Origin: Bugula neritina | Lineage: Eukaryota > Animalia > Bryozoa | Length of the DNA stretch: 64,000 nucleotides | Direction of reading: 5' to 3' | Assembly: GCA_964035545.1 (NCBI GenBank) | Contig: OZ037768.1 | Span: forward strand, 24,089,319-24,153,318 | Shown here: in pieces, positions 5,601 to 64,000 of the stretch | Numbering within the stretch: position 1 is the stretch's first letter | How the letters are laid out: the number at the start of each line of letters is the position of its first letter | Notes under the pieces: generated by a model | The model's input: only the letters and a program-made list of their open reading frames with translations | What the model was told of the DNA's origin: nothing | Databases searched by the model: none | Position numbers and translations under genes: made by a program

Positions 5601-6036
5601 AGTATTCTTAAACCACCAGCGTGTACCACACCAGGAGCCATGTCGTCTGTATCCAAACTCACACTGACATTCACATCGTCTTCTGCATCTTCTTCTAGCT
5701 CCAACTGTGAGCTCAAACCAATTCCTAAATGAAAAACAAGCACAATTTAAACATTCTTTCAAATTATTTGTGTTTGTTACAAGTATTCGTAAAGCTCGGC
5801 CTTAGATGAATTGCCGGTTAACCTTGACCTTTTTTACCTGAACTCTCAGGAGTTGCCTTCTTCAACTGCTTGCGTTTTTTATTTGCATGTTCCTCTCTGG
5901 TGAGTCGGCCGTACTCACTGATCACATTGATAGTGAGGTCTCTATTAAACTCTTGTACCGGGTTATAGAAAACTCCTTTAGGGAGATACGTCTTCGCCAA
6001 GCCTTCAGTTACAAGGTTTGGCACATCAGCCGCCAT
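2646..6036 (-). CDS. TRMT1: tRNA (guanine26-N2)-dimethyltransferase, 8 coding exons
   Basis: Exons 6036-5823, 5724-4990, 4893-4780, 4602-4386, 4099-4009, 3819-3659, 3056-2927 and 2762-2646 join in frame with GT-AG introns. Motifs [49 protein letters not shown] and KTDAP are present, plus a C-terminal CCCH finger ([20 protein letters not shown]). Confidence 0.96.
3068..3647. repeat. Intronic minisatellite, 32-bp unit, about 18 copies
   Basis: Unit cagtagaatactgactatattatcatattaca fills nearly all of the TRMT1 intron at 3057-3658. Confidence 0.95.
4143..4358. repeat. Intronic minisatellite, 24-bp unit
   Basis: Unit acattgtgatacacagtagactag in a TRMT1 intron. Confidence 0.9.
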
Positions 6037-24300: not shown

Positions 24301-27300
24301 AAGGGACGGGTTCCGGGCTGGACTGACGTCGCCGCTTTGTCTCTTTCTCTCCCGGACTGGGGGCGGAGTCCACCTCAACCACTTCGGGCACAGCTGCACC
24401 GTTCACCACCTCCGAGTCTATGGACGTCTTGAGGTCCGGCATTATTTCCTGGAGACAGACACACAGTATCGTAGACAGAGTTCTACTAACTAGACTGAGT
24501 AATATTAGGACGTGTCTTCACACACCCCTACCTTCAGCGACTCTGTGGATATGGAGATGTTCTTCTTATCAGACGGTTTCTTGCCTCGACTCCCTCCCCA
24601 CTTCCTCTTCTTCCTGTCTTCTGCAGCCTCAGAGTCTTTGCTTGATCTCTCACCTTTACTCGACCTCTCCTCTACACAGGTCAAAGTTAATGAATATGTA
24701 GCACGAGGCAATATATACAGTGTGTACAAAATACAAACTGAAACTTTACCAACACACTAACAGCATTTCTTTTCTCAACAAAAAACCTAGAGATTTAGAT
24801 TTGCAAATATCCACCGTAAATAATCAAAGGAGACCAAATTATTCCTCTAAAAAATTTAAAAAAAGCTTCACAACTAACTTGCTAGAGAGATCTTGCGTGG
24901 CTTGATGGTGGGCTCTTTCCTAACTGGGCTCACGGGAGTCTACAAATACAGCGGAGTTGGTTTACATGAGGGAAAACTCCCTGAGAGATATAGCAGTGGA
25001 GGGAGGGGCGTACAGCGAGCCCACATTTCCATCTCCTGTCTGATAGAAACAGAACCAGCACTAAGTAAGGTATAAGTCATGGACTGAGTTTCTATCAAAC
25101 AGGAGACAGAACGGAGAGGGAGGGAGACGACTTCTTATAGTAAGTTTAAACTGTTACCGCTGCCTTTACTCATGCTGCTGCTGCCGCTGGTCCAGAAAGA
25201 AGGAAGGATTTGTATGAAGAAAACACTAGCCAGGTCTTTGATAAATCAGGAACACTCGTGATCTTCACAACTGGCTACTATAACCGGGGGCATGAGCTGC
25301 GGGCAGCTACACGCCATGACCCCTTGGCAAGAGGGCAAGGGGTCAGAGCCCTCTGTCCTACAGGTCAAGGACAGAGGGCGTTCCTCTAAGTTGGTGTGAC
25401 ACAGTTACCAGCGTGTGTTCTACTAAGTCAGTTCATCATATCAGACAGGTGAAAGAGTGTCAGTGTTGGTAAACACACCAAGTATATAATATCTTCACAT
25501 GGCATTGTCACAATCAGATGGGGGGGATATCCTTCTACTAGTTAGAGTCTCCTTAAACAGATCCTTCTACTCAAACCAGTCTTTGATAACTAGACGCTTA
25601 GAGTTCAATGTTCATTCTGTCCATAATAACTTAGTCTCAGGTCCTAAACTGGTGTCAGTGTTAGTCTGGGGGAAACACCACCCAACAGTACATCGTATCT
25701 TTGAGTACGACTCGACTGAACAGCCCAGAGAACACTTCCTGTCCGGAAGAGCTTGCCTAGCTAGATCATATAACTGGCATTGCAGGGTAACACTACATTT
25801 ACTCTACAGTGAGTATACTTACTATACACTACTCTACAGTGAGTATACTTACTATATACTACTCTACAGTGAATATACTTACTATACACTACTCTACAGT
25901 GAGTATACTTACTACATACTACTCTACAGTGAGTATACTTACTATACACTACTCTACAGTGAGTATACTTACTATACACTACTCTACAGTGAGTATACTT
26001 ACTATATACTACTCTACAGTGAGTATACTTACTATATACTACTCTACAGTGAGTATACTTACTATACACTACTCTACAGTGAGTATACTTACTATATACT
26101 ACTCTACAGTGAGTATACTTACTATACACTACTCTACAGTGAGTATACTTACTATATACTACTCTACAGTGAGTATACTTACTACATACTACTCTACAGT
26201 GAGTATACTTACTATACACTACTCTACAGTGAGTATACTTACTATACACTACTCTACAGTGAGTATACTTACTATATACTACTCTACAGTGAGTATACTT
26301 ACTATATACTACTCTACAGTGAGTATACTTACTATACACTACTCTACAGTGAGTATACTTACTATATACTACTCTACAGTGAGTATACTTACTATATACT
26401 ACTCTACAGTGAGTATACTTACTATATACTACTCTACAGTGAGTATACTTACTATATACTACTCTACAGTGAGTATACTTACTATATACTACTCTACAGT
26501 GAGTATACTTACTACATACTACTCTACAGTGAGTATACTTACTATATACTACTCTAGAGTGAGTATACTTACTATACACTACTCTAGAGTGAGTATACTT
26601 ACTATACACTACTCTACAGTGAGTATACTTACTATACACTACTCTACAGTGAGTATACTTACTATATACTACTCTACAGTGAGTATACTTACTACATTTT
26701 ACTCTACAGTGAGTATACTTACTATACACTACTCTACAGTGAGTATACTTACAGGAAGGGGTTCCTCAGCTACTTTTGCTGTCTCATCTCTGTAAAACAC
26801 AGAATCACATCAACTGCCACTTTAAATTCAGTACTTTACCCATGTTGTCAAAAAAGTAGACTGTTGGGTGTTAGTCATTCATATATGTAGACATATGTAA
26901 ACACACAGACAAACACATAGACACACAGACAGACACGTAGACACACAGACAGACGTGTAGAGAACTCACTCTCCGGGCATCTCCTCGTCATAGTCAAGCT
27001 GCTCGTCCTGCTCTGTAGTTGCGATGTCCAGAGCTGACCCGTCTGCTACGGACAACTTCGTCTGCGATACCGAGTCCTCAGAAATCTCAGACACACCTAC
27101 CTCAGTCTCCTGCAATACAATACCATTGTTCAGTGCCAAGTTTGACCCGAATGGAATGGCAAGAGCATAACGCGAGAAATCTAGAGGAAGATCTAAGCTA
27201 CCTTAGCTTCACTCTGATCCTCCCTTTCTTCTACAGTAGCTTCAGTGCTGACTGGCTTAACCACCTTTTTCGACTCGAAGCGTTTGGATTTGTCTCTACT

Positions 27301-30137
27301 CGATCGCCAAGAACGCGACGACTTTTTATCACTTTTTGTAGTTTTTAGCTCCTCTTTACTTGGAGACTCACTCACAGAGTCGGGAGTTGTATTCTCCATC
27401 TTTTCTTGCGCTTCAGCTTTCGATTTGTTTCCTTTATCTATAACCTCCTTTTCACTATCGGCTTCCTGTTCATCAGCCTCAGTCTGCTTCTCTCCCTTAT
27501 CCTTCTGCTTCTCTACCTTATCCTTCTGCTTCTCTACCTTATCCTTCTGCTTCTCTACCTCATCCTTCTGCTTCTCTACCTCATCCTTCTGCTTCTTTAC
27601 CTTATCCTTCTGCTTCTCTACCTTATCCTTCTGCTTCTCTACCTCATCCTTCTGCTTCTCTACCTTATCCTTCTGCTTCTCTACCTTATCCTTCTGCTTC
27701 TCTACCTTATCCTTCTGTTTCTCTACCTCATCCTTCTGCTTCTCTACCTCATCCTTCTGCTTCTCTACCTCATCCTTCTGCTTCTCTCCCTCATCCGTCT
27801 GCTTCTCTACTTCGTCCGTCTGCTTCTTTTCCTGTACCACTGAACTGCTTTCCTTATCCTCCTGTTTTTCTTCGTCAGGCTTCTCGTCTCTCTCATCAGA
27901 TTTAAATGCCAGGTCTTCTGCAGGTTTGGGAGAGGGCTCTGGCGTCTGCTGATTGTACGTGTCTTCATCAGCAGCTGAGATACTCGCCTGCTAAATACAC
28001 ATAATACTAGTACCTTGCTAACTATTAACTAGTACCTTGCTAGTTATTAACTAGTGCCTTGTTAACTATTAACTAGTACCTTGCCAACTATTAACTAGTA
28101 CCTTGCTAACTATTAACTAGACGTTTAACCACTTCACGCTACTGTTCCTGGAAAGAAGACAATTCCTAATAGCTGTAGAAATAACTGATTTACAAGAGTT
28201 CTAATTAATACAAAATTGAATACTAGGAGTAGCTTACCTGTTCGGTCTTCTGTGTGCGAACGTGTTGAGCTGACGGGGCATGCTTGCGGGGTGATCGGGA
28301 CAGAGAGCGTGAGTCTTTCACTGGACTCTCGGGTTCCGTCTGCGAAATAAAGAGATCAAAGGTCACAGAGGGGCAGCAAACATCGACACATGGCAGCAGG
28401 ACGTCAACAGGGACAGTAGTACTACCCCTAGTAGAGGTACTATGAGTAGTACTACTGACACTGCAACTGAGTACTACTCTAAGAGTTGGTTAAACATGGA
28501 TTACCTGGGAATCATCTTCTTGACTTTCACTTTCACTCGGAAGGGTCACGTCCCCTTGACCTTGTGACTGTCCCAGTCTTTCCTCCTCTACAAGAAAGCA
28601 CAATTAACAGTCACTTTAGAACACAACAAATGGCTGTAGACAAAGTATCGCACTGAGAGGTCTACACTTCCAAACCCATCGGCCTCGACTTCGTCACAAT
28701 CTGATATTGCTGCCACTTTGACCGGCACAGTGCACTCAACTGTGTCAGCTTCTCAAATGGCAGCATGGATAGCAAACTTAGTAGAACTACACGCTCACCT
28801 TCTAACTTCCTACGAGCCTCCTTTTGAGCTTTGAACAGCAGCTGTCTCTGCTCTAGGTACTGCTTGACAAACTCATTATCTGTGTCAGCGCCTTCGTTCA
28901 GGTCCGGCAGCTGATCTGGTGCTGGCTGGGCCTGCAGTTTCTCCAACTGCAGTTGCTGTAAAGTGAAGACACCTTTCATATCACGTGCTGATTTAACTAC
29001 AGTGTCGGCCAAATATCTGTTGGAACTGCTGGCTAAATGCCTGCTCTACTAGTGAAGTAAAACCCTAAAGAACTTTTTAGAAAACCAGACAGCAAGTTTC
29101 TCAATATCTTAGCTGTTAATTTTTACACAGACATCAACCAAAAGATTCTCTAACAGCTGTTTACTCTTAGCAGTATATTTTCATGTTTCAATCTTATATG
29201 AATATTTTAGCATGACCAAGACTGGGCTCTATCACAGTAAACAAACTTGGCATAGGTGAGTAAACCATTGAGTAGCTATGTCAACTGATTAGCTGTTGTA
29301 GTTTCAACACTGATTTTTCGTTGTCATTTTGATTATGGTGCATGCCTTGCAACACATACTGATATTATCATAGTTTTTATACTCATAATAACGAGAATAA
29401 TTATAAATTTATAATATGAATATCTACCACTACCAGTGTCTGACAATCACAATGAAAATGTAACCCGTTTAGATTTATTGATTCAACCTATATTATTTTT
29501 AATTGAAAGTGCGAGTTTTTAGGTAACAATAAATATAATACTAAATAGTAAATACTAAATAGGCAATGACAATAGCAGATGCAAAGTATATTTTTTAATA
29601 AACTTAGTTTCAAGTAGTACTCTAAAACTACTCACAACTTACAAGGGTTAATAGTAATATACTAGACCAGTAGCCGTAGACATGTCACATATGACATACT
29701 ACTTAGTCTTACTAGTACTAGTACTAGTTATACAGACACTCGTAAGTACTAACTCTAAGCTGCAGTAGTACTAGTAATACACGTAGTGCTAGCAGTACCA
29801 GTTTGAGTTTTACTTTTTCAGTTTTTGTTAAAACTCAAATCTCGATCACAATGACAATGGACATGGTTAATCAATATCAATATGAATATCATCGAATGAT
29901 CAATCACCAATGACATGAGATTGAGTATAATATTAATAACCGTAACCGTAACGTCTGGCATAACCTGTATATTTTATAGGAGCTAAAAAAGCTTACAGAT
30001 CTAAGACGAGTTACTAATTGCGTTTTTGAGCCCGTCTTCGGCAAACCTCGACGCTCTAATTCTTCCTTTAAATCTTTAACACGCAAGTCTTTGATCAGTT
30101 TTCCTCCAACTTTTAAATCGGCCTTGTCGTCAGCCAT
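21376..30137 (-). CDS. ACIN1: Apoptotic chromatin condensation inducer (Acinus), multi-exon
   Basis: N-terminal SAP domain ([28 protein letters not shown]), RKRKWG and ISISTESLK motifs, RRM ([19 protein letters not shown]...[29 protein letters not shown]), RSB motif ([20 protein letters not shown]) and an RS-rich tail. Confidence 0.95.
21615..21790 (-). repeat. Coding 30-bp tandem repeat ([10 protein letters not shown]) in the ACIN1 RS tail
   Basis: gccattctcttgggactagggctac... repeated about 6 times in frame. Confidence 0.9.
25790..26752. repeat. Intronic minisatellite, 30-bp unit, about 32 copies, starting at an ACIN1 splice donor
   Basis: Unit actctacagtgagtatacttactata(c/t)act. The last copy contains the real minus-strand donor at 26752. 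Confidence 0.97.
27485..27825 (-). repeat. Coding 21-bp tandem repeat (KQKD[EK]VE heptad) in ACIN1
   Basis: About 16 in-frame copies within the large exon covered by ORF 27193..27840. Confidence 0.9.
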
Positions 30138-31327: not shown

Positions 31328-33180
31328 ATGGGTACAGATATGGAAAATAGCAATGTTGAAACACCCAAGGCCAATCCCGCACCAGAGTTTGAACCATTAG
31401 CTTCCCAGATATCAGAATTGGTGACGGTTGATTCCACAGCTGAGGTGAGAATACTTCAAACTCAAATACTCTCGGCTTTTAGAAACAAGTATAAGAATGT
31501 TCCTTAATTAACTTGTTATGGTATTCATATAATTATTTCAAAACATGCTTGTAAATTGTTTTTTGCAGAAATAAATTTCTGTGGAAGATTTTACTGTTAC
31601 AGCAGTTTCATTTGTAGGAAAAGAAATTGAATGATGAGATTGACTTGATGCTACACAAGATCTCTGAGTTTATGGAGATATTAGAAATGGTATCCAACTT
31701 TATAGTTTATTCCTATACCTACAATTGTAAATTGTCTGCTCCCCGCATCATTAAAAGCCGGATATTTATTGTCTTGTGTAAGAATATGAGCAGCTTTATG
31801 GTACCAGAGGGCAGAGGTGTGCCAAGTTTAATAATGCCTAATTTACATGTTTTTGTGTTCCTACTTCATGGAATATACTTTCACGGTGTGTTGATGTTGA
31901 AATTGGTTAGTTTCAGACTTGCGAATAATACATAATGTGTTGAATGGCTTTGATATAGTTTTTCATGTAGGAACCATAACTTACTATTATTTCAATATTT
32001 GCATTATTCAATCTGACTAGAGAGGCAGCATGTTGCATTGCTGCCGGGGTATTCAGAAGTGATGTTGTACTTTTCAGATTAGAAGCGACACGAACATGTG
32101 TGTTAACAGTACGTTACCTCTCATTACAGAGAAGTCTAGAGCTCTTGAGCAGACATTTGATAGAATTGACAAGCTAGAGGTCAGTGGTTGCTGGTGTGTT
32201 GCTATGATACCATCTAATAGAACTATTACTGTGTTATGTGGTCCTATTTTACTCTCTCTAGTATTAGTAGCACTACTCATTGCTAGTAATAGTACTGCTA
32301 GTAGTAGTACTATCACACTACTAGTAATACTAATACTATTAATACTATTACTAGTATAACAGATTGTAGCTGTAATATCTTATAGGTGATGGTGTCACAC
32401 ATAGACCAAACTCTTACCAAACTGGAGCAGCAGGTTAAAGGAGCAGAAGCTAACTTTAGCACTTTCTCCACTTTCAAGAAAAAGATGCTGGGAGCTCTGA
32501 GCAGCATCGGGGTGAGTAGATGTGCACAAGTGGTGACAGGTATGTACATGTAGTGACAAGTGGATACATTTGGTAACAGGTGGTGACAGTGATGACAGGT
32601 GTGTACATGTAGTGACAAGTGGATACATTTGGTAACAGGTGGTGACAGGGATGACAGGTGTGTACATGTGATGACAAGTGAATACATGTGGTAACAGGTG
32701 GTGACAGTGATGACAGGTGTGTATGTGTAGTGACAGGTGTTTACATGTGGCGACAGGTGTGTATATGTAGTGACAGGTGTGTACATGTAGGGACAGGTGA
32801 GTATATGTGGTGACAGGTGTGTACATGTAGTGACAGGTGTGTACATGTAGTGACAGGTGTGTACATGTAGTGACAGGTGTGTACATGTAGTGACAGGTGT
32901 GTACATGTAGTGACAGGTGTTTACATGTGGCGACAGGTGTGTATATGTAGTGACAGGTGAGTACATGTAGTGACAGGTGAGTACATGTAGTGACAGGTGA
33001 GTACATGTAGTAACAGGTGTGTACATGTAGTGACAGGTGTGTACATGTAGTATTGGATGTTTCCTACAGAGAAGTCACCAAGACACGAGTCCTGTCTATC
33101 AAAGACCTGTAGAAGGAAACGCCAGCAACTATGAAAAAGTAGAGATATTCAGCACTTCTGATTTCTTTCCTGACAGCTAG
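31328..33180 (+). CDS. BLOC1S4: BLOC-1 subunit 4 (cappuccino), 5 coding exons
   Basis: Exons 31328 (or 31340)-31444, 31618-31689, 32079-32179, about 32386-32511 and 33070-33180. Motifs EIDLMLHKISEFMEILEMIRSD, LEQTFDRIDKLE and terminal IFSTSDFF. Confidence 0.85.
32530..33050. repeat. Intronic minisatellite, 20-bp unit
   Basis: Unit gtgacaggtgtgtacatgta fills the last BLOC1S4 intron. Confidence 0.9.
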
Positions 33181-48291: not shown

Positions 48292-48397
48292 CTCTCGCGC
48301 TCCATGTGCACTGGTGCTCAGACGGCACGCCATCAAAGTGATAGACCTTGCTGTAGAAATAGGATTTGATACTAACAGACCTCTTTCTAACTTCACT

Positions 48398-50282
48398 ATG
48401 AGTGCGAGTTCTTCTAAACCATCTACTGGTAGACACAACAAACTTTATAGGACACCCCCAACACCCACTCCTGATGACTTGATGCGAACTGAAAAGGGTT
48501 TTGTCTTGGATTGTCAAGCTACTTCTAGTATATCTACTGACTATTCCAAAGCTAACCCAAAGTTAGGACCCGTAATACCGCCATATAACGGCCAGAAAGA
48601 TAGTCACACTGACGGATATTTCAAGTTCCACAGTGTCCCACAATCTCTTAAGTTCTACAACCAGGTTTGTGCAATCAATACTCACTACATTAATTTGTTA
48701 TAAATACTGTTACCTGTCTGCATGTGTAAAAAACCATAAGCATATTGTCGAATAGTATTTTAAGAAAAGACAAAAATAATTAAAATTAACTTAAATATAT
48801 CAAATGTTTGCGGCATATATACAGATATTGCTACAATACTATGACACAAATAATTAACAGTTTATATCTTTTTATATTCAACATGTTTATAGCATTAGCT
48901 GGTTTTCAAACATAGACATTAGTTTGATACCCATGTGCAGTTTATTTCTTATTCTTTAACTTCTTTGCTTACATTTTATTGTGATTATAAAGCTCATGTG
49001 AGCATATTTAATTAGTTCTTGAAAAGGGGTGGTTAACATGAATTTATGTACAACAAACTATAACTGTGTGTGTTCATATATTAGCACATATAGCACCATG
49101 GAATCATATAGCACCATGGAATCACTCTATATAAACTGACTATAATACAAGCTGTGTACATATTTTAAGCAATTATATAATATAATTAAACTATACTGTA
49201 TTTAAACACAGGACAAGGCAAAAGGTACGTCAATTGATGGGCCAGTGTTGGATAGATTTAATGAGTCGGGTGCTGGATTTCAGTACCTCAGTCTAAGAAA
49301 TCAGCATGGAGCAGGTACGTACAACCATATTGTTAGATATTATTATTTTCATCATACAAAAATATATATAATTATTGAACTACAGAAAACGCTTTTATTA
49401 TGGAGTTGGATGCAAATATTGAACAGAAAATAAATAAAGTGAGAAAACTTTTCATTTGACTGCCATTCATGCTGGAAATGTTGTTACAAGGAGTTCATGC
49501 TATTTCTCTGGGGTATTTATTGTATAGTAAATGTTAGACTACTTTGCTATGCGCACTTTGATGAGAATATTATGTAAAATTACAATTTTAAAGTATACAA
49601 GTATATTATGTAGCAGTAGCATTGAGAAAATATTTTCATCTGTTTTCACAATAATAAAACATTTATGTTTTACTTATAAGGTAAAATAATAATTAATAAT
49701 TAGTATTTGTTAGATTGATTTTGCAACATTTTAAATTGCCATGTGTAGTAAAGCTCGATATTGTTTTATATTTTATAAGAGTATAGATGACGAATTGTGG
49801 AGTTAGTTTATGTATTTTAGTAGTATATAATATCATATTATTTGTGCTATGTGTGCTGTTGCATGTATCATCAACTTATTGCATAGTTTTGTTATTATCT
49901 GTTACACTATTTACATTTCACATGCTCATGATATATAGACTGTTAGACATCAATGCAGACTGTTCTGAATAATATATGAAAGAGACTAATGTGTGTCTGA
50001 AAAGATGGCTGATAAAATGAATATATTATTATTATTTGTATTATTTGTATAAGGTTTGCATAACCAATTATATTGTAACTAAAAGCATTGAGGGTAAACA
50101 TTTAGAAATAATGTTGTTATATAGGTCATTCCAGACAGGAAGTGGATGGACACGCCCAGTTTATGAAAGGAATTAAACCAGTGATGGGGTACAATGGCGA
50201 CTTCGGGTTCCGGAGAAATACACCATGGCTGCGGGCCGAACCCTCGCCATTTGGCACTGCCAGTCGATCTCCCAGTCATTAG
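48398..50282 (+). CDS. SPMAP1: Sperm microtubule-associated protein 1 (C17orf98/SPMAP1), 3 exons
   Basis: Exons 48398-48664, 49212-49314 and 50124-50282. Motifs EKGFVLD, PKLGPVIPPYN, YLSLRN..GAGHS...VDGH and GYNGDFGFRRNTPWLR match the C17orf98 family as I recall it. Confidence 0.88.
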
Positions 50283-51214
50283 ATAATAGAAAGTGACCCA
50301 GTAGTACTACTATTAATAATGTAATAGCTAATAGTAATACTAATAGTAATACTATAATAGTAATACTAATAGTAACAATGTAATACCTAGTAATATACTA
50401 ATAGTAACAAAGTAATACCTAGTAATATACTAATAGTAATAATATAATATAGCTAGTAATACTAATGGCAACTGGATGTCATTGAACTTAGCTGCATGTA
50501 GTCTCAACATCACATTCGCATTATATACATGCATGACCTACTATAGATGAATAGTCTGAGCTCCATATATCCTCTACACCCTTCTCATCACCCACACCAC
50601 ATTCATCTGCATTTGAACTAAAACTAAAGACAGTTTAATTAATGCAACATGTTGTAAATTTCAATCAATTTTTAGTTAAACTTGATTTGTTCAGAATCTA
50701 CAAGTTTTTAATGAGCCAATTATATATGTATGCATATTCACTGCTGCATGACTCATACTGTATGACTCATACATGTGTCGCCTTAATTTATTGGTAGATG
50801 TATGAGACACTAGCCAATTAGAAAGAGCTGTATTACTTGAGTTTATCGCAATATACTATTTTAATTTCAACAGTTCATCAAATGTTTTATTTTTTGACTA
50901 CATACGAACAATAGTTGTGCATGTAAAACATTAATTTATTTTATATAACACTACATTTCATTTCTGCTCAGAATATATGTATTTATTATATTATAGTATA
51001 TTACACAAACTACATGTGTTTGTATTTTTAGAAACATTTATTTGATCGATGAAGGATTTTGTGCTTTTTATGGCTTCTATTTTTCATAAATTTGCTGTTT
51101 TTAGTGTTGAATAAACAATATTGTGAAATATATACAAAACTGTAGTAGTGTTTAGCAGGTGAAAGCTAAGACCCATATTATATATGCCATTTAATGCTTC
51201 AACTTTGAACCCAA

Positions 51215-51285
<71 letters not shown>

Positions 51286-52369
51286 GCCACTACTAACTAT
51301 GCGAACAGCTAATTGGCTATAAATACATCATTATATAAAAATTAATGGCCACTTTCAATTATTTGCAAAAAATAATTGCATTTTCACTTCCATGTAGTGT
51401 AGTATATATTGTATAAAATAATGCATAAGATAAACACTTCATGATTACTTGTAAAGTTGACTTCGTTTCAATTTATTCTGTCTCGATTGTGAAGCCATAG
51501 CCATAACCATAGCCATAAAAACGCGCAGTCTAAAAGAATAATATTATAATTGTAATACGGAATAGCCGACTGTGGAAGCTGCAGCAATAACATTGTCCTA
51601 TCGGAATTTCCAGCTATTATTGTGCTATCAGAATGTTCCAGCAGGTTGTGGAACCTGACAATATTATTATAACAATTCCAACAGTGCAGTATAGAGAACG
51701 CGGGCTGTTTTCGTTAGAACACGCTTTATTTAGGATTGCACAAAGCAAAACCAGTGTGGCGGGAGGTTCAAGCTCTCTAACCGTTGAATATTCAAAGGAG
51801 GGAAGGGGTAAACCGTAATCATAAGGATGATGAGTTCATCAATATCATTCAAAATCACATTTCTAGTCAATAGTTTTTAATATATAATTGTTTTTAAGAA
51901 AATATTGCTAGTTTCTTGGTTGTGATTATCGATTTACAAGAAAGTATAATAACTATAAGAATGGTGTAAATTAAAATTGTAATGCCTAATAGTAATACTA
52001 ATAGTAATGGCCGTGGCATACACCATCACCATGCTCTTTCTCCCTGACACTGAGTAATCACAATGAGAAGATCGTGATGTTGATAATTGTAATCATAATG
52101 CAGACTATTGCAAATACTAATAGGTTTTTTTTGATGGAGTTGTGCTTTTACTCTTAATATATTATCAAGTCAGTTTAGCCTTAGGCCTTAGACAACTAAT
52201 AGTAATAGTAATATTTGTATATGCCAGGAAAATTGAGCTATTTCATGGAGGCTTTTACTTTTAGTTTTGATCTGTGGATTGCAGTGTGCCTTCCTGGTTA
52301 CATTGGGATATGGCTATAAGTATAACTTGTAAGTTGCCAGTAATGCTTGTGTTTTTAGAATTCATCAAC

Positions 52370-55074
52370 ATGGCTACACACAGAGTTGTAGAGGCAACAT
52401 ATAGTATTCACAGTGATGATACAGGAGATGAGCCAATCCGCTGTACTGAGTCAGTTACTGCTGAGTCAGTCACTGCTGAGTCAATTCCCGCTGAGTCAGT
52501 CACTGCTGAGTCAGTCACACCTCAGTCAGTCACTGCTGAGCCAGTCACTGCTGAGTCAGGCACACCTGCGCTAAATGACAGAGAATCATTACAAGACATT
52601 GAGGTGAGGCTACAGACTGCAATCTATCATACACTGCAGGGAGGCATGACTACATGTATGAGTTTATTTGAATAACCAGAAAACCATACGAGTGGATATT
52701 TATTGAAATGCCACACAGTGTCTAGTCTTACATTTTTCAGCATATTAACTGGAACGTTAAATTAAAGATATTTTAGCTACAAATGAAGAATTTCAGCCAT
52801 TAAAAATATTTATTATAATTTTTTTTCGCATAATTGATTAATTTTAAAGAAACTCCTCTGATATTTTAGCTGCAAGATTTAGACAGCAACTTCGGCGCGC
52901 TGGGATCTCAATTCAGAATCACAGCTCCAGATGCAAAAGCTCGCTTGCGGGGGCTGAGGTATGAGCCCAGGACGTTGTCGCTGTATGATCATGCAATTAC
53001 AGTAGAGCAGTTGGCCCAGATTGCCTACGACGATCTGGCCGAGGCCGACAAGAGAATGCTGACTCTGAAGGCGTTCTTGCAGTCTCTCAACGACAGGGAG
53101 CTACATCGACATTTATTGGCAGCTAGGGTTGAGACTATGGAGGACGCCGTCAAGCATGTTAGGTGGTACTTCCAGGTCGCCAATCCACAGTGGCAGGTAA
53201 TAAGAAGATTAAAAACAGTGAAATATCATAAGGAAGCTGTTAAACTCGAAATCGCAAGTTTAGTTCAAACTGACAAATTTCTTTTTGCTGACGCTTTCTC
53301 GACAGCATCACCTTCATCTCACTGCAGTACTTGGGTAGCTGCTGGGCTATATGTATGAGTTGATTTGGATAACCAGAAAACCATACGAGTAGATATTTAT
53401 TGAAATGCCACCCACTGTGTCTAGTCTTACATTTCAACTAGTTAAATTGAATTTTTGTGGATACAACTTCCCTGATATTCGACTACAAATGAATGATTTC
53501 AGCTATTAAAAATAATTATCAATTTTTCTATTGCATACTCTGAATGATTGTAGAGAGCAGCCGTAATCTAGGGGTTAGACCGTTTGCCTAGTAAGCACGA
53601 AGTCATGGGTTCGAGCCCCGACAAAGGCCATTGGTGATGTTAGGAAGAGCATCCAGTCATAATTGCTCCTGTGTCTCATCTAAATAAGCCCTTAGCTTGA
53701 TTTAACGAAAATTTTCTAAAAAAAAATTCTCTCATTTTAGTTGCAAGATTTGGACAAAAACTTTAGCGCGCTGGGATCCCGGTTTGGGATCGCAGCCCAA
53801 GATGCAAGAGATTGCCTGCGGGCGCTGAGGTACGATTCCAGGATCTCTCTTTATGACCATGCGACGAAGGTAGCGCGGTTGGCCCAAATTGCATATGGTG
53901 ATCTGAACAAGGCTGACAAGCAGAGCCGGGCTGTGGATGCGTTCTCACAGTCTCTCAATGACAGGGAGCTCCAGCTAAATTTATGGACAGCTAAGGTTGA
54001 GACTCTGGAGGACGCCGTCAAGCATGTTAGGTGGTACTTCCAGGTCGCAAATCCTCAATGGCAGGTAATAAGAAGATTAAAAACAGTGAAATATCATAAG
54101 GTAGCTGTTAAACTCGAAATAACAAATGTAGTTAAAACTGATAAATTTGTCATTGCTAAAATTCCAGCTGACGGTTTCTAGGCAGCTTCACCTTCATCTC
54201 ACTGAAGTACTTGGGTAACCAGCTGCTGGACTATATGTAGGAGTTAGTTTAAATAACCAGAAAACCATACAAGTGGATATTTATTGAAATGCCACACACT
54301 TTAATTACTATCTAGTCTTACCTTTTTCAGCATATTAACTGGAACATTAAATTAAAGATATTTTCGCCGCAAATGAAGAATTTCAGCTACTAAAAAAATT
54401 AATAATTTACCTACCCGGAATGATTGTAAATGAAAAATTTCTAATAAAATCCTATCATATTTTAGTTGCAAGATTTGGAAAAAAACTTCAAGGCTCTCGG
54501 GTCCCGATTTGGGTTCACAGCCCGAGATGCAAGAGATTGCCTGTGGGCACTGAGGTACGAGCCCAAGACGTCCCTGCAGGAGCATGGAAACAAGGTGGAG
54601 CGGTTGGCTCAGGTTGCCTACAGTGATCTGGACGAGACCGAGGCCGACAAAAGAATGTTCGCTCTGGAGGCGTTCACACGCTCTCTCAATGACAGGGAGC
54701 TACACCTACATTTATTGGCAGCTAGGGTTAAGACTGTGAAGGATGCTGTCAAACAGGCGAAGGCGTACTACCAGGTCGCCAATCCTCAATGGGATAACAT
54801 GGGTGCCCGGCAGGAGGACGAAGAAAAAGAGAGAGCAACTTCTGACGCTACTCAGGAGATGAAAGTAGCAGCCATGATACGGAAGTTGGTGAGAGACCTG
54901 CAGGTCGAGGTTAAACTCCTTCAGACGAGAGCAAGCGGTCGGCCAGCCATGCCGCGGAAAAGCTCTGCCCAGGCTTCCCCCACTGCCTGTTGGGGGTGTG
55001 GCATTGAGGGACATCTCCGACGGAATTGTCCCCACAGACGGAGGCAGCAGTCAAACCCAAAAATCTCACGGTAA
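52370..55074 (+). CDS. Spliced gag-derived gene: S/T/E repeat exon, three Ty3/gypsy capsid C-terminal-domain repeats, CCHC knuckle (about 497 aa)
   Basis: Exons 52370-52603, 52870-53196, 53741-54064 and 54466-55074 are joined by phase-0 GT-AG introns and contain no stops. Gag-like ALGSRFG...LRYEP.TSL.EH...VERLAQVAY...AF..SLNDREL..HLLAA...T..DAV occurs three times, then CWGCGIEGHLRRNC. Confidence 0.8.
53553..53703 (+). mobile_element. tRNA-derived SINE in intron 2 of the gag-derived gene
   Basis: A-box-like taatctagggg near 53564, B-box ggttcgagccc at 53608-53618, and a non-tRNA body (aggaagagcatccagtc). It is absent from the homologous intron at about 54428. Confidence 0.75.
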
Positions 55075-55621
55075 CTTTGCCACTCATGGGCCTGGGTAAA
55101 GGCCTCCCTCAGAGGGTGTACTCCGCGCCAAGAAAGGCATAAGAGGAGCCCCTACTTCCTAAGTAGCAAGCACCTCGTAACGTAGACTTCGGAAGCCTCA
55201 AGGCTTACCCAAACCTCTGGCTCAGGAATTGGTTTGAGGTACTGCCAGAGTTGTGTATGTAGAACATTATTCCATACTACATTTCATTTCTGCTCAAAAT
55301 AAATTAATATTATAATATATTACATAAACTCTGTGTTTAAATTTTTAGAAACATTTATTTGCTGGATAAAAGATTTTGTGCTTTATATGGCTTCTATTTT
55401 TCATAAATTTGCTGTTTTTAGTGTTGAATAAACAATATTGTGAAACATACAGAATTGTAGAAGTGTTAAGCAGGTGAAAGCTAAAACCCATATTTATATT
55501 TTATGTCATTTAGTGCTTCAACTTTGAACCCAAAACAATATAGTTTGTATGCTGGATGTCCTAACACTGGTTGCACTGTATAAAATTATTAAATTTATCT
55601 TATAAGATAGATCAATACATG

Positions 55622-55654
<33 letters not shown>

Positions 55655-57428
55655 CATGCAAAAGGCTACCAGGCTAATAAATTATTATACACATTATGTA
55701 ATGTGAATAATTGCCACTCAATTATTTTCAAAGTGTCAATTGCATCAACACTCAAATAAAAATTATTTTTCTCTTTAATCCATATACTATATGTTTAATG
55801 TAGTATATGCATAAAATAATGTAAATGCTCAAAAAATGTTCATTATCATATTTTAGTAGTTATGATAAATATTTCATGGTTTATAAAGCTTGTGTCACTT
55901 TACTTTATTTTGCCTTGCGTACAAGATTTTTGCAACCATAAAAATATGCGGACCATAAAAACTGCTGCCAAAACATTATACTGTTGGTTAAATGAATTTC
56001 CCAGCAGGTTGCCGAGCAATATTATTCAATAATGCCAACAATGCAGACTATAGAAAACACGAACTGTTTTTGTTGGTTATAAATCGAGCAAGCTTTACTA
56101 GGATTGGACAATGCAAAAATAGTGTGGCGGGAGATGCAAGCGCTGTTGGTGTTGATGAATCAATCAATATTTCTATCAGCAGCTCCGAGTTGGTGGTGAG
56201 TGAAGGCAGTAGTTTGGGGCTCTCGATTTTTGAGTTGGGGACGCAATTTCAAACGTCAGACCCCCCAACTACTGCACTCATTCACCGCCAACTTAAAGCT
56301 GCTTCTAAGATCATTCTTAGTCGAATGAGTTCATCAATGTCATTCAAAATCAAACTTCTACTTCTAGTTCTAGTCAATATTTTTAATATGAGCTGTTTAT
56401 AACAAACTATTGCCAACTTCTGAGTTATTATTATTGTTTTACCAAAGTGGCTCTTCAGCATAAACATTTAAAAATGAATTTTAATTTCAGAATAAGTCCG
56501 ATTCTCATTATGATAATAATCATCATCATGATTATGATTATCATTATGATTAAGACTTAGATTAACACTCTAATTCTGTGATTGACTCAGACTGATCTAT
56601 TTTCAGTTTCACTGTTTGAGTTTCAATTTCAGTAAATAAGGTTGAACTTTAAATTTTAATGTTATTTTCAAGTTCAAGTTGTTACACTTAGACTTACTAT
56701 CAATATAAACTATAAAGCTAAAGACTAATCGTTATACTTAAATATTGTAACAATCTTTATCATTATGATTATGTGAAAATTGAAACTTAAACTATTAGTA
56801 TTAGTAAAAGTATTGACAAATATAAATTTTTTCGAAAAAGTTGAACAAATATTTTTCTGTTATCAAATTGAAATAAGTTAAAATTAAGTCCAAAATACAA
56901 ATGTAAAGTAAAATTCAACTAGGATATAATTTATGTTATTAGTTACAATTAATATTATAGGAATACTAATAGTAATAGTTTCAGTTTCTAATAAATACTT
57001 GTAGTCAAAGTAGTAATCACTACTAATAACAGTAACACTAAGGGTAATACTAATTCACCCAATTACTATTTCAGTATTTGTTAGTAATGTGCTATAACTA
57101 TAAGTTGAGGTAAATGAATTTCTAATCCCAAGTTGAAATTGGCTATCATTGTGATTTTCAGATAGTCATTTCATTGTGATAGTTAGACTGACTCTGAGTA
57201 ATGACAATGAGAAGATCACGATGTCGATAATTATAGTAATACAGACTTTGGCAAATAATGTAGTTTAGTGAAGTTGTGCTTTTAGCAAGTCAAGTGAAAT
57301 TGAACATTAGACAGATTCTGACTAACACATGGGGCCTTTTGATCTGTGGATTGCAGTACGCCGTCCTAGTTACATTGGGATATGACTGTAAGTTGCCAGT
57401 AATGCTTGTGTTTTTAGAATTCATCAAC

Positions 57429-59579
57429 ATGGCTACACACAGAGTTGTAGAGGCAACATATAGTATTCACAGTGATGATACAGGAGATGAGCCAATCCGC
57501 TATGCCCAGTCCGTCACTGCTGAGTCAAATCTCGCTGAGTCAGTCACACCCCAGTCAGTCACTGCTGAGTCAGTCACTGTGGAGTCAGTCACACCTCAGT
57601 CAGCCACTGCTGAGTCAATTCCCGCTGAGTCAGTCACACCCCAGTCAGTCACTGCTGAGTCAGTCACTGTGGAGTCAGTCACACCTCAGTCAGCCACTGC
57701 TGAGTCAATTCCCGCTGAGTCAGTCACACCCCAGTCAGTCACTGCTGAGTCAGTCACTGTGGAGTCAGTCACACCTCAGTCAGCCACTGCTGAGTCAATT
57801 CTCGCTGAGTCAGTCACACCCCAATCAGTCACTGCTGAGTCAGTCACACCTCAGTCAGCCACTGCTGAGTCAATTCCCGCTGAGTCAGTCACTGCTGAGT
57901 CAGTCACACCTGCGCTAACTGACAGGGAATCACTACAAGACATGGAAGTAAGGCTACAGACTGTAGATACATGCTGTAATCTATCATACACTGCAGGGAT
58001 GTACGATGGCATTTGGACTGGTTGATGCTTTCTATGATGTCCAATAATGTTTGAATAAATTGCAATATGGCTATCAAGATTGACTATATCTGTCATGGCA
58101 AGACATTCTTTTTATAATTACATGAAGTTTATAGTTATATTATATTATTTATAGTTACATTTGGAATGTATTAAAGAAGAACATGCCAGGTTCACTTTAG
58201 AAAGGAGGGCCTGGAACAAGCTACTAGCTGACCGAAAGGCACAGGTAAAGATTAAAAACAGTGAAATTTCATAAGGTAGCTGTTAAACTCGAAATGGCAA
58301 ATTTAATTGAAGCTGATAAATTTGTCCTTGCTGAAATTTTAGCTGACGATTTCTCGACAGCATTTCCTTCATCTTCCTGCGTTACTTGGGTAGCGAGCTG
58401 CTGGGCTATATGTATGAGTTAATTTGAATAACCAGAAAACCATACAAGTGGATATTTATTGAAATGCCACCCACCGTGTCTAGTCTTACATTTCAACCAG
58501 TTGAATTGAATTTTATGGATACAACTTCGCTGATATTCAACTACAAATAAATGATTTCAGCTATTAAAAATAATTATTAATTTATCTGTCGAATATTCTG
58601 GAATCGTCTAATCATGCTGTTTGAAGCCTGTGACCTTCCTGTAGACTAAGAGGTCAGAGGACATGCTGAAAGAGGTGGAGCAAGGTGGGGACCCGTGGAA
58701 GTGTAGGCGGAGAAGCGGCTACCTCCCTCCACCCAAATGGAAGTTCTCATGTAAAGAGATCCTAGATGAAGTGGACACTTACATCACCAGGGCATCGCTA
58801 GCGGTGGGTCTAGTTTGTCTATATACAAGGGGAGGGGGGAGAGCCGGGGGTTCCAATCTCATTGAACTGGGCTGCTGAATCCAAGCTAATGTGTCAGAAA
58901 GTTATCTCCGACAAATCATGTTTTTAACTGCCATCTTTGAAAGAGTATAAATCAAATTCTACCATCTCAACAGAAGCTCAAGCTTCATGGTATCATATTA
59001 CTTGGGCCTATTTTTGGCCGTATTAAATTAAATTAGGTGATTTTTGAAAAAATATTTTTAAAGTCATATGAATTTCCTCTCAATTTTATTCCCCTCACAC
59101 TTGGCACACAAAATACTTATGTCATATTTTGTTGATACAGTTTTGGCTATTTAGTGACTAAAATAAGAAAATGCATAACATAATGCGCTGAAAAGTCAGC
59201 GTTAGTGCACGCGATTATTGTAGGCATCAAGATTTGTGAAGAGATCTATAATTAGTATTCCATACCCAGTTGGTTCTCTTTCTGCTATTCTTAGATTCTG
59301 ACCTGATAATGTCTTGTGTATACAATCAAATTGTAGGCTAAGTTCATAATGGAACACAAGGAAAGTACGGCCACAACAGGCATCCACCCCGTAACAACTG
59401 AAGCAGATGCCCAAATGGAGTTATCTCCTAGTACAGCCATTAACCAATCAAATGTATTGTATCAGACGCTGCGGACCAGTGAGCCAGATATTAGTATGTT
59501 TGACGTATCAACCAGAGAAGTCATACAAAACACCCTGAAGAATTTGGAGGCTTCAAGAAAAAGACGATCCATGCATTAA
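57429..59579 (+). CDS. Host gene, 3 exons, about 283 aa: repeat N-terminus plus coiled-coil region tentatively resembling the DSN1 C-terminus
   Basis: Exons 57429-57947, 58155-58244 and 59337-59579 are joined by phase-0 GT-AG introns. KEEHARFTLERRAWNKLL...QAKFI resembles vertebrate DSN1 as I recall it. Further upstream exons are possible. Confidence 0.6.
57510..57912 (+). repeat. Coding 15-bp repeat (ESVTA/QSVTP) with 90-bp higher-order periodicity
   Basis: Blocks recur at 57541, 57631 and 57721. A shorter version lies at about 52446-52568. Confidence 0.9.
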
Positions 59580-61127: not shown

Positions 61128-64000
61128 TAGTGGGGGTGCCAACATGCAAAAATGGGCGGGTGGAGCACATCAATACTAACCTTTGTTGCTATATATCACT
61201 GCAAAGCCAACATTCTACTGATCTCAGATCTGCGAGTACCTTTTTTGTATCTGGGGGGGTTCTCTCGTGAGAGGGGTGGATATACAGGGGTTCAGCATTT
61301 TTCAAGGGGGGACTATGGAACTCTAAATATTTAATTTTCTGAGTAGTTTAAGTTTGACATTAAAAATATTTTCAAGGAATGTTATACACATATGAAACTT
61401 TCTCTAACAAAAGTTTGGACCAAAAATAAAAAAGTGGGCGGAGCCTATAATATGACAAACTACATTTTTGCATATACCGGATATTCTCTAAACTGCTACT
61501 TTTCTGTTCTAGCATTTAGAATGTTGATTTTTGGTATGAAAATACTCTATTGTGTTCTAATAATGCTCTCCGATTTTCATTACGTTCTGAACTATATAAC
61601 ATCTTTCCCAACCATGACAAATAAAAAACATAAAACGGGAGTTATCTCCTCCGTTAAAAATTATTGCATTTCTACCCAATAATATTGCTCTTTGTTGATA
61701 GGAACAACATCAGCATGATAAAAATGTATTCTTAGCGTATTTATATTAGCTTATTGACTTATTTTGAATCATTAATTACGATCAATACTATTGAGTATTA
61801 ATATTCAATATTTACTGTATAAATTGAGTGTCAGCAATAATTAACAGACCACTAATATTCGATTTTTTTATCCATAAGTATAGTAACATAAAATATGGTT
61901 CATAAAAAAGTAATATTATGATTTCAGCATCACAAGCAATTACTATGCTCTTTTATATCAGATATTGGTAGACATTTGTAATTGTATTTATTTATAAATA
62001 AGATAGTATTTAAAATTTTAATTTACAATAGATCAAGCTTTATTACAAAGTTTTGTTATCTCTAGCGTTTATATACCAAATTAAATATGTTATAACTCTT
62101 CATCAGAACTGTGTTTGTTGCCATCATCATCATAATCAGGCTCTTTGTTTGAAAAAGAAGACTGGCCACTTTCGTTGTTGCAATCGAAACATTCACATAA
62201 ACCACAGCATTTCATCATCAGGCGCTTGCATTTGCATGCTTTACTCTTACAGCCTGCTTTTTTGCATTTACATGCTGTTAAAATCACATCTGCGTTGCTC
62301 TCAAAATCATATTTTATTGGAGTCAAGTTGGTATCCCAACCATGGTCAAAAATTGGCTGATGAAGTAAATTAGGTGTAAAAGAAAGTTGCCAAAGTGTAA
62401 CTTGATAATTGGCTCGTTTCACGTGATATTCTAGGGAATTCCTACTAGGTGGTAGCTGTGCTTCACTGGAGACATTTTTTAAAGCCAATATTTTATATCT
62501 TGCTTCAGTAATATCATCATAGGCACCATATAGGTTGGAGACAAATCATTCACACTCTAAGTATGTTTCTTCTGATACTGGGGACCAATCATTAGAACCT
62601 AAAGACAGATTATAGCTTTCCTTTTCAAGTACCTCCAAAGCACGCTTTTTAGATATTCGGAAGATAGAACTTACTGAGTCACAACCTGTAAGTGCATGGA
62701 GTGATAATAGATTCTTGAGAACTTTTTGTAGATTTTTTTGGCTGATTCAAAAAGAGACATATATCTTCTGTGACTCCCCATTCCAACGAAGATTACTACA
62801 TCTTTATTAGCGTGCTCAGTTAAAACATTACTAAGATGATGTTAAGCGCAATAATAGCAACATTGGTATCTACTGATCTTATTACTACCAAATCGTAATC
62901 ACTCAGTGCATCAGCTGCATGAAGGATTAATCTCAAGTCTGCTTCATCATGATTGGATTTCAATTTGTTACAATTTTAACGATAATGGTTTTGCAGAACA
63001 CAGACTTCTTTGGCGCTACACACTAAAAATGTACCAGCTGGAATTTTCTCAATATGTCTTCTCCATGCACCTTCACTATGTAATCTACCAACTCATTTTT
63101 GTTGTGAATATTGCTCAGAAAAGCACTCCAGTTTTTAGGAACAGGCAGGTTGTTATGAATAATGGAAATAGAGCACATCTATTGGGCACCCCGTCTAATA
63201 CGCTCTTGTGCTTTAATTAATGTTTCAGAATACACGTCAAACACTACATCAACCCTTGTATATCCTTTGCCACATTCAAGAAATATTTCCAACATCTTCA
63301 GAGCATAGCTATAAAAAGTGCCTGATGTTTTTGTCGAGTGAAGTATGCACATACCATCAATAATGATCGATTTGTTGGTGGACAGTTGACTATCATCATT
63401 GGAGACCCTGTTTCCAAGATATTTCTGTTCCAAAATATGCATTAGTTGCAATTTGCATGTTTTTCTCATCTGTCCGTTTTCAGTAAATAGAGCAAGAGGA
63501 ATGGGACCAATTTTTTTCTCTAGAACTGTATGCAAATCTTTGGCACTTTTGGCACTTATGAGAAGTTTAGCAAATGATATTTTAGGAACATTTGGTTTAA
63601 TGGCCGGTTGAAGTGATTTAGCCACAAAGTCAAAGGAAGGGATTTTAAGCCGGTGAATAGCAGTGTAAAATGGTTTTATTGTATTCAAAAGTCTATCTTG
63701 AAAAAACTTTTGAGCCATAGCAGTCACTATTGACAAGAAGGTCTCCGCATCGGGACTTACTCCAGTAGCAATATTAATAAGTTCAGTTGAAGTATTGCTA
63801 AACAACTTAACATCAAACTGCTGCAATGTAAAAAGAATTGCTTGTGTATCAATCTCATCCGTCATAGTTGTAATGATTGTGTCTTCCTTGTGTAGTGTTG
63901 ATGACTGTGAGGCTATTTGGCAAAAATCCTTTTGCAAAGAAAGCAGTTGGGCTCTGATATGACTAGTTAAGAACCATTTTGTCCGAGCTTCTTCATGGTT
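61128..64000 (-). mobile_element. Decayed Academ (AcademX-type) DNA transposon in a CSNK2B intron, truncated by the window end
   Basis: XPG/PIN-like motifs IIDGM, VDVVFDVY, HDEADLRLILHA, SVDTNV, LHALTGCD and LPPS...HVKRANYQ, followed by a Cys-rich CKCKKAGC...CKC...CCGLCEC tail. Frameshifts and a premature TGA (62546-62548) are present. Candidate terminus TAGTGGGGG at 61128. Confidence 0.75.

Follow-up and report, generated by a model that had tools for sequence, protein, structure and literature searches.

Domestication of retroelement gag genes is known from Arc, PNMA, PEG10/RTL, SCAN, Fv1 and Drt2. In the shells formed by Ty3, Arc and PNMA2, the N-lobes of the capsid protein make five- and six-fold rings and the C-lobes make two-fold contacts. 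The known animal cases come almost entirely from vertebrates and insects and consist of a single gag-derived unit; a survey of co-opted gag genes in animals contains no bryozoan case, and none with tandem C-terminal domains was found there (PMC8321522). In yeast, Drt2 is a gag fragment that has been endogenised and fixed and evolves under purifying selection (PMC13709905). Here we describe a candidate domesticated gag gene at positions 52370-55074 of a 64,000-nucleotide (nt) stretch of contig OZ037768.1 (positions 24,089,319 to 24,153,318 of the forward strand), which was analyzed at its full length and is referred to as the window.

The predicted product of this gene carries three tandem capsid C-terminal domains and almost no N-terminal domain. 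A chimeric, intron-bearing gag domestication with three C-lobes would represent a new architecture among tamed gag genes, and it would extend gag domestication to a new phylum, most likely Bryozoa. We favor, with some reservation, the reading that the locus is a domesticated, non-mobile chimeric host gene that acts by pairing of C-terminal domains and by RNA binding, with interference in Gag assembly as its top-rated role.

Gene model, gag kinship and predicted fold

An initial annotation of the window, made from its letters, had read four exons joined by phase-0 introns (78+109+108+202 aa). We found these exons in place, giving 497 codons that stay open from the start ATG at 52370 to a TAA at the end. 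All introns are of the GT..AG type and lie in phase 0; the exon 1 donor reads GAG/GTGAGG, the module donors read CAG/GTAATA and the acceptors end in ...tttag. The base composition of the window is 64% AT, and the GC content of the gag-derived coding part is 53% against a background of 36%. The features of the gene are listed below. Positions prefixed L009, L005 or L001 refer to metagenome contigs that carry the orthologous locus, and "parent" refers to the paralogous gene downstream; both are described in later sections.

52370-52603, + strand: exon 1 (E1), 78 aa; conserved N-terminus, then a pentapeptide repeat that is acidic and rich in Ser/Thr; host-derived, with a paralog in exon 1 of the downstream gene; ortholog at L009:1118-1366
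52446-52563, + strand: coding 15-nt tandem repeat, 7.9 copies (Tandem Repeats Finder); 26.7 copies in the paralog at 57505-57910
52604-52869, + strand: intron 1, a composite of the start of parent intron 1 and the 3' part of parent intron 2
52870-53196, + strand: exon 2, module G1, 109 aa; last capsid N-lobe helix and five-helix capsid C-terminal domain; ortholog at L009:1670-1990
53197-53740, + strand: intron 2, a copy of parent intron 2 from the GT onward, carrying a SINE-like insertion at 53551-53715
53741-54064, + strand: exon 3, module G2, 108 aa; ortholog at L005:622-945
54065-54465, + strand: intron 3, a second copy of parent intron 2; orthologs in L001 and L005
54466-55074, + strand: exon 4 (E4), 202 aa and TAA; G3, linker, knuckle and tail
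54466-54792, + strand: module G3, codons 1-109 of exon 4; closest of the module copies to transposon gag
54793-54987, + strand: linker, one long predicted helix (E4 residues 127-157); counterpart of the spacer helix in full-length relatives
54988-55029, + strand: CCHC zinc knuckle, CX2CX4HX4C (E4 residues 175-188); motif kept in L001
55030-55074, + strand: C-terminal tail and TAA; stop position matches the gag stop of related elements
55075-55248, + strand: 3' untranslated region (3'UTR); decayed gag-pol junction and start of the pol open reading frame (ORF), ending at the junction with block X
55298-55303, + strand: candidate polyadenylation signal AATAAA, read off the sequence; a second one lies at ~55427-55432

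An acceptor-like ...tttttag lies 11 nt 5' of the ATG and suggests that there may be an untranslated upstream exon. In the ortholog, an in-frame 60-nt tandem duplication (L009:1055-1174) takes in both the start codon and the acceptor-like site, leaving two possible ATGs.

The three gag-like modules had been described as diverged copies that differ by substitutions, some of them synonymous, and by indels of 3 or 6 nt. The pairwise comparisons bear this out: G1, G2 and G3 share 62-68% protein identity, with synonymous divergence (dS) of 0.48-0.59, nonsynonymous divergence (dN) of 0.18-0.21, many substitutions that are synonymous, and indels that are exclusively 3 or 6 nt. The CX2CX4HX4C motif said to follow the last copy was likewise found. 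With the modules as queries, tblastn gave E-values of 1e-40 to 1e-45, and a second taxon shows the same arrangement of exons and introns; together, these results place the description of the gene far beyond chance.

A HMMER search with exon 4 against 1.84 billion representative proteins returned 610 relatives, 169 of them at E<=1e-10. Nearly all of these are proteins of ~300 aa in which the aligned part is the C-terminal ~190 aa and the same knuckle closes the chain, and the related gags are 30-50% identical to the modules, with E-values down to 1e-25. On contigs L002, L003, L004, L006 and L007, the domains Asp_protease_2, RVT_1, RT_RNaseH_2 and, where the contig is long enough, rve lie directly 3' of gag. 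Since the gag ORFs of the relatives precede protease, reverse transcriptase (RT) and RNase H (and integrase), the gag fragment is, judged by these alignments, of the Ty3/gypsy (Metaviridae) type. The nearest transposon gags, those of L007 and P0056, are decayed and 47-50% identical to the modules, the host genome having been sampled through short contigs. Decayed gypsy-type copies (L006 and L007) sit in the same samples as the ortholog contigs, and L004 looks intact.

Feature searches and structure models were run on single exons. Pfam gave no capsid family, no C2H2 and no KRAB match on any of the exons, and returned only zf-CCHC at E 0.006, which is below the family cut-off. The profile of the family matches retroviral nucleocapsids by way of the CCHC knuckle (E 5e-8). 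A sequence-profile search of the Protein Data Bank (PDB) also matched the knuckle alone, with no capsid match, and a comparison of folds was therefore needed.

The AlphaFold2 model of exon 4, built from 122 aligned sequences, had a mean predicted local distance difference test score (pLDDT) of 83.5, with values above 94 over residues 20-100. Its C-lobe consists of helices 19-28, 37-51, 59-74, 77-86 and 91-105, the five helices of a capsid C-terminal domain. In Foldseek, the top PDB matches of this model were all retroelement capsid C-terminal domains, at target-normalised template modeling (TM) scores of 0.6-0.67. The best match was Ty1 p22 (probability 0.99, target TM 0.67), and the further matches were PNMA2, Ty3, the Arc C-lobe (TM 0.66), PEG10, MOAP1, Drt2, copia, SCAN and the C-terminal domains of HERV-K and RSV. 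A comparison with Ty3, Arc and PNMA had been recommended in the initial annotation, and the C-terminal domains of Ty1 p22, PNMA2, Ty3 and the Arc C-lobe were indeed among the matches (E 0.14-2).

A full-length relative of 301 aa (P0013) was modeled at a pLDDT of 84.7 and shows an N-lobe of four helices and a C-lobe of five, followed by a spacer helix and a knuckle; its model matches the capsids of PNMA2, dArc1/2 and Ty3 (E 1e-4 to 6e-3). The sole helix before the C-lobe in exon 4 (residues 4-15) corresponds to helix 105-116 of P0013, the last of the four N-lobe helices. N-lobe helices 1-3, which make up the N-terminal ~100 aa of gag, are absent from every module in the models of exon 4 and P0013 and in the alignment. 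This agrees with the earlier statement that the capsid N-terminal domain is mostly missing. In these models, each module is the last N-lobe helix followed by a complete C-lobe. The predicted product would thus comprise a disordered acidic N-terminal repeat, three capsid C-terminal domains, a helical spacer and one CCHC knuckle.

The same models bear on whether the protein could be a capsid former of the Arc or PNMA kind that assembles closed, RNA-carrying particles. It belongs to the gag superfamily that includes Arc, dArc and PNMA2 and it retains the knuckle, but the shells of Ty3, Arc and PNMA2 (PDB 6r24, 6tap, 8rb3) need both lobes, and each module keeps one of the four N-lobe helices. Three C-lobes per chain would, moreover, misfit an icosahedral lattice. 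Because the ring-forming N-lobe is missing, the product would be unable to close a shell. We therefore regard a particle-forming role as very unlikely, and the earlier doubt about a normal capsid was well placed, given the absence of N-lobe helices 1-3.

Selection at an orthologous locus

The ortholog material consists of three short metagenome contigs (L009, L005 and L001) from JGI samples 3300002729 and 3300003318 and represents one other taxon. These contigs are labelled AY690838, the accession under which the Bugula neritina mitochondrial genome is filed (PMC2678162), and most likely stem from the host itself, sequenced along with its symbionts in B. neritina metagenomes. Because dS between the window and the contigs is ~0.2-0.26, the lineage of the contigs and that of the window are probably close relatives or siblings.

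L009 spans the upstream region, exon 1, the composite intron 1 and G1 and runs into intron 2. L005 covers the remainder of intron 2, including the SINE seen in the window, and continues through G2 and intron 3 into the last exon. L001 starts near the end of G2 and extends across intron 3, the complete last exon and the 3'UTR into block X. A stretch of 69 nt is identical between the end of L009 and the start of L005, and the three contigs tile one E1-G1-G2-G3 locus in which splice sites and phases are the same as in the window. The initial annotation had asked for orthology in relatives, and what was found is a fixed locus with orthologous flanks. At the protein level, G1 is 84% identical to its ortholog in L009 and G2 is 77% identical to that in L005.

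The ratio dN/dS was calculated by the Nei-Gojobori method between the window and L009, L005 and L001. It was 0.32 for G1 (p 0.003), 0.47 for G2 (p 0.02) and 0.29 for G3, which was compared with L001 (p 8e-4). The three modules pooled gave 0.36 (p 5e-7), and all gag exons together gave 0.43 (p 3e-6). Comparison of module with module inside the window, which had been put forward as a check, also gave values below 1 (0.33-0.45, p 5e-5 to 4e-3). By these measures, the modules are under purifying selection.

In the module tree, the copies group by orthology, G3 with L001 (support 0.999) and G2 with L005, and 16 module-specific residues are kept between the taxa; on both grounds, the three copies appear to have been kept distinct. 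The lineage-specific gag domestication proposed in the initial annotation therefore holds up, with gag homology, a capsid C-terminal fold, an orthologous locus, purifying selection and a restricted distribution all pointing to it.

If the locus were a non-functional relic, either a fortuitously open frame with fortuitous splice sites or a decaying pseudogene, the two taxa would hardly be expected to look as they do. In the window, the 497 codons of the four exons are open throughout, and the corresponding exons of L009, L005 (its module exon) and L001 are open as well. Indels in the coding sequence are in frame only: a single one of 9 nt occurs in G2 and exon 4 (933 nt), and the G1 ortholog has one extra deletion of 6 nt. 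The flanking non-coding DNA, on the other hand, has 14 free indels in ~975 nt, most of which are not multiples of three (Poisson p ~1e-7), and the 3'UTR has diverged from that of L001 at K 0.187 with indels of 2 and 5 nt. Neutral substitutions alone would leave exon 4 open with a probability of 0.02-0.08, and the adjoining pol remnant did decay. Together with the low dN/dS of the pooled modules, these comparisons make a relic improbable, even though the gene model is predicted from DNA, the last exon of L005 has a 1-nt insertion and the tail shows a dN/dS near 1.

Origin of the chimeric gene

The initial annotation had seen no LTR, protease, RT or integrase at the locus. This was also our result, as tblastn with protease, RT, RNase H and integrase from related elements detected no pol-like sequence in the 64 kb and blastn self-comparison detected no long terminal repeat (LTR)-like direct repeats flanking the gene. 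A multi-copy mobile element or a recent insertion would account for a coding sequence that is gag-derived and GC-rich (53% vs 36%), but it would be expected to have LTRs or pol. The introns and exon 1 come from the host, and the second taxon has a single orthologous locus with the same flanks, the same SINE and the same intron composite. Among the 1.84 billion representative proteins, moreover, none but the locus and its ortholog exceed 57% identity to the gene. Scans of a metagenome contig collection with G1 and with the module alignment gave no match, and that collection evidently does not include these JGI samples. A mobile element is scarcely credible on this evidence, and an active or recently inserted retrotransposon was ruled out, given the lack of pol and LTRs and the host origin of the introns.

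What was captured can be read from the 3' end of the gene. In tblastx, the 3'UTR (55075-55248) resembles the sequence that lies just past the gag stops of L008 and L002, with the matches scattered over broken frames. Because of this resemblance to the region that follows gag, the captured piece is, as far as the alignments tell, collinear element DNA comprising the 3' two-thirds of gag and ~170 nt of the start of pol, now decayed. The gag stop codon would accordingly be ancestral.

The host contribution can be read from a gene 5 kb downstream of the candidate, which shares with it the upstream region and the first exon. The features of the duplicated segment are as follows.

50793-52369, + strand: block X, putative promoter and 5' untranslated region (5'UTR); common to the downstream paralog at 55249-57428; left edge set by alignment with L001
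57429-59579, + strand: downstream paralog, the "parent", with E1 57429-57947, E2 58155-58244, E3 58645-58803 and E4 59337-59579; all phase 0; modeled by eye
53551-53715, in intron 2: SINE-like insert of ~165 nt with a tRNA-like B-box motif; also in the ortholog at L005:351-508, with a dispersed copy at L007:361-505 on an unrelated contig

The exons of the parent gene contain no gag-like part and gave no family match in Pfam. The SINE-like insert was not recognized as a tRNA by ARAGORN or Rfam. A separate upstream gene of at least three apparent exons, which has no family assignment, lies at 48314-50283 on the + strand; it ends ~500 nt before block X and marks the left limit of the duplicated segment.

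In a blastn self-comparison of the window, 50913-52642 and 55249-57999 formed collinear blocks of 72-89% identity. Within these blocks, 115 nt across the ATG (52328-52442 and 57387-57501) are 100% identical, with flanks that are ~80% identical and contain indels, which suggests either that gene conversion took place recently or that constraint is very strong. The number of 15-nt coding repeats is very unstable between the paralogs, being 7.9 copies in the candidate and 26.7 in the parent (57505-57910, with a higher-order period of 90 nt).

The introns of the candidate derive from parent intron 2 (58245-58644). For introns 2 and 3, homology begins at the GT itself at 79-86% identity: in intron 2, 53205-53542 matches 58248-58600 at 85.6%, and in intron 3, 54073-54412 matches 58248-58587 at 78.5%. 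In intron 1, 52604-52642 matches 57948-57999, approximately the first 40 nt of parent intron 1, and 52650-52815 matches 58406-58579. The same intron 1 composite is present in L009 at 85% identity. The repeat unit of the gene is an exon plus an intron, 871 and 725 nt long, with 76% nucleotide identity over 570-741 nt. The captured gag piece runs up to block X, where the duplicated host segment has its left end; the edge of the block was set with L001.

These junctions indicate that the gene is a chimera born at a tandem-duplication junction, in which a host upstream region, exon 1 and introns were joined to a gag fragment. The simplest history that accounts for them has four steps. The 5' part of the host gene would first have been tandemly duplicated up to intron 2, and a gag fragment at the duplication junction would then have become the terminal exon. 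In a third step, a segment running from the final 3 nt of host exon 2 through intron 2 and the module would have been tandemly duplicated twice, by which each new module would have gained a ready donor and acceptor in phase 0. A later deletion would finally have removed host exon 2. The one-exon-per-domain layout follows from the twofold tandem duplication of a host intron together with a gag module. The composition of the duplicated segment, in turn, accounts for modules that end in ...TGGCAG/GTAA.. and a last copy that reads on. The exon-per-domain structure noticed in the initial annotation was thus confirmed, but the repeated introns, and the derivation of exon 1 and the introns from the neighboring gene, had been overlooked. 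Three independent gag insertions were ruled out as an explanation, as the flanking introns were duplicated along with the modules.

The intron copies cluster by genome and not by position. The two introns of L005 differ by K 0.098 and window intron 2 differs from parent intron 2 by K 0.16, as compared with K 0.19-0.23 between positional orthologs. This indicates that the introns evolve in concert within each genome, with the modules held apart. Dating of the steps by divergence was rejected, since introns that group by genome have undergone concerted evolution.

The junctions between host promoter and exon 1, the retroelement fragment, and the host intron that was reused as a splice cassette for each domain can all still be read. 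As such, the locus would offer a clean example, of a kind rarely documented, of how exon shuffling and domain amplification make a new multi-domain protein in a few steps that can be traced.

Elsewhere in the window, an exon of a TRM1-type tRNA (guanine-26-N2)-dimethyltransferase gene (4985-6096, - strand; Pfam TRM, E 1e-82) is an ordinary housekeeping neighbor. Two long ORFs of 132 and 252 aa lie at 62090-63937 on the - strand, the first with a Cys-rich, CXC-like stretch and a weak Tesmin/TSO1 match (E 0.01); they may be transposon-derived and have no similarity to the gag gene. Long minisatellite-like arrays at 25499-26795, 27193-27952, 32313-33026 and 21376-21940 are open in several frames, and the minus-strand arrays at 27.2-27.9 kb and 21.4-21.8 kb encode Lys/Glu-rich and Arg/Ser-rich protein repeats.

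Candidate function and known systems

Action by pairing of C-terminal domains is proposed because a chain of C-lobes cannot close a shell and yet can pair with other C-lobes. The product would combine three-fold multivalent C-lobe pairing with nucleic-acid binding by the knuckle, and its pairs with related gypsy-type Gag would be dead ends for particle assembly, as with Ty1 p22 and Drt2. By analogy with these proteins, poisoning of Gag assembly is the single most likely role, although we assign it tentatively. In its favor, the pairing domain and the knuckle are retained and the ring-forming lobe is lost, which is what lattice poisoning of the p22/Drt2 type needs (PMC13709905).

A more specific version, in which the gene would give animals their first equivalent of p22 and Drt2, the lattice poisons of yeast, with three surfaces on one chain and a knuckle, appears doubtful. 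According to this scheme, RNA would draw the protein into assembling gypsy-type particles, where several Gag dimer sites would be capped at once, the capped Gags possibly belonging to different element families. If the protein is a true lattice poison, then poisoning by a C-terminal domain, so far worked out in yeast, arose independently in animals, and the multivalent design could guide thinking on assembly inhibitors.

The C-terminal domains might instead serve as SCAN-like dimerization modules in a host scaffold or regulator, an RNA-binding network-former unrelated to transposons. SCAN and the C-terminal domains of PEG10 and MOAP1 are among the Foldseek matches, and the module-specific residues conserved between the taxa would suit distinct partners. 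The host-derived exon 1 is kept in both taxa, and there is no close transposon relative on record, the best being 50% identical. However, any partners of such a scaffold would be hypothetical, and the linker and knuckle tail appear nearly unconstrained (dN/dS 0.87). The gene is, in addition, known from the window and one close relative, which better fits a young defense gene than a core factor. We consider a scaffold nearly as likely as a role in poisoning Gag assembly.

Several observations weigh against a domesticated gene that interferes with Gag assembly. The mechanism of Ty1 p22 and Drt2 needs near-identical dimer surfaces, and yeast Gags that are 79% identical escape cross-restriction (PMC13709905), whereas the nearest transposon gags here are decayed and <=50% identical to the modules. 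No sign of positive selection was seen, the selection on the modules being purifying and not diversifying. The linker and knuckle tail (54793-55071) has the dN/dS of 0.87 given above, not significantly different from 1. The search with exon 4 turned up no spliced product of the gene among the 1.84 billion representative proteins, which is a weak negative. The Foldseek E-values of the modules are weak (0.14-2), so that the fold assignment depends on how consistent the matches are with one another, on the TM-scores and on the gag homology. The ortholog evidence is thin, coming from short metagenome contigs. L001 and L005 are only 97.5% identical in the exon and 94% in the intron where they overlap (L005:1366-1565 vs L001:431-630), and an additional G within a G run of the last exon breaks the frame in L005; a second haplotype or copy with a broken frame, or an assembly error, could be behind this mismatch. 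The order of events in the origin of the gene is uncertain as well, as concerted evolution of the introns bars dating by divergence.

With these points taken into account, we still favor a domesticated host gene that works by C-lobe pairing and RNA binding, and four groups of known systems allow it to be placed. Ty1 p22/p18 and Drt2 (PDB 7nlg, 7nlh, 9rxy) likewise keep the C-terminal domain of a capsid protein and have no working N-terminal domain, and Drt2 and the gene described here are both fixed gag fragments under purifying selection. Unlike the present gene, which is of Ty3/gypsy type, these proteins are of Ty1/copia origin, and they have a single domain with no introns, knuckle or host exon. 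They are also 91-100% identical to their targets, as compared with <=50% identity to the closest transposon gag here, and their inhibition has been demonstrated, whereas that of the present protein is inferred.

Arc/dArc, PNMA, PEG10/RTL(SIRH) and MOAP1 resemble the gene more closely in ancestry, as all derive from a Ty3/gypsy-type gag, have lost LTRs and pol, and are fixed under purifying selection; some of them keep the CCHC knuckle, as this gene does. In architecture they differ. They have both lobes in a single copy, and several of them form capsids, whereas the present gene has three C-lobes and almost no N-lobe. Their gag-derived coding sequence usually occupies one exon, in contrast to the multi-exon structure with a host-derived first exon seen here.

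SCAN (2fi2, 4e6s and 3lhr in the Foldseek list) is also a lone capsid C-terminal domain that serves as an oligomerization module attached to host protein parts. It occurs, however, in one copy as a domain-swapped dimer, is fused to C2H2/KRAB and is vertebrate-specific, whereas the gene described here has three copies and no C2H2 or KRAB; the superposition of SCAN on the exon 4 model is poor, with a root-mean-square deviation (RMSD) of 10-11 A. The Ty3/gypsy Gags of L004, L006 and L007, finally, show the same order of C-lobe, spacer helix, knuckle, stop and pol start. The present gene differs in that N-lobe helices 1-3, pol and LTRs are absent and in that its C-lobe has been triplicated together with host introns and placed behind a host promoter region and a host first exon.

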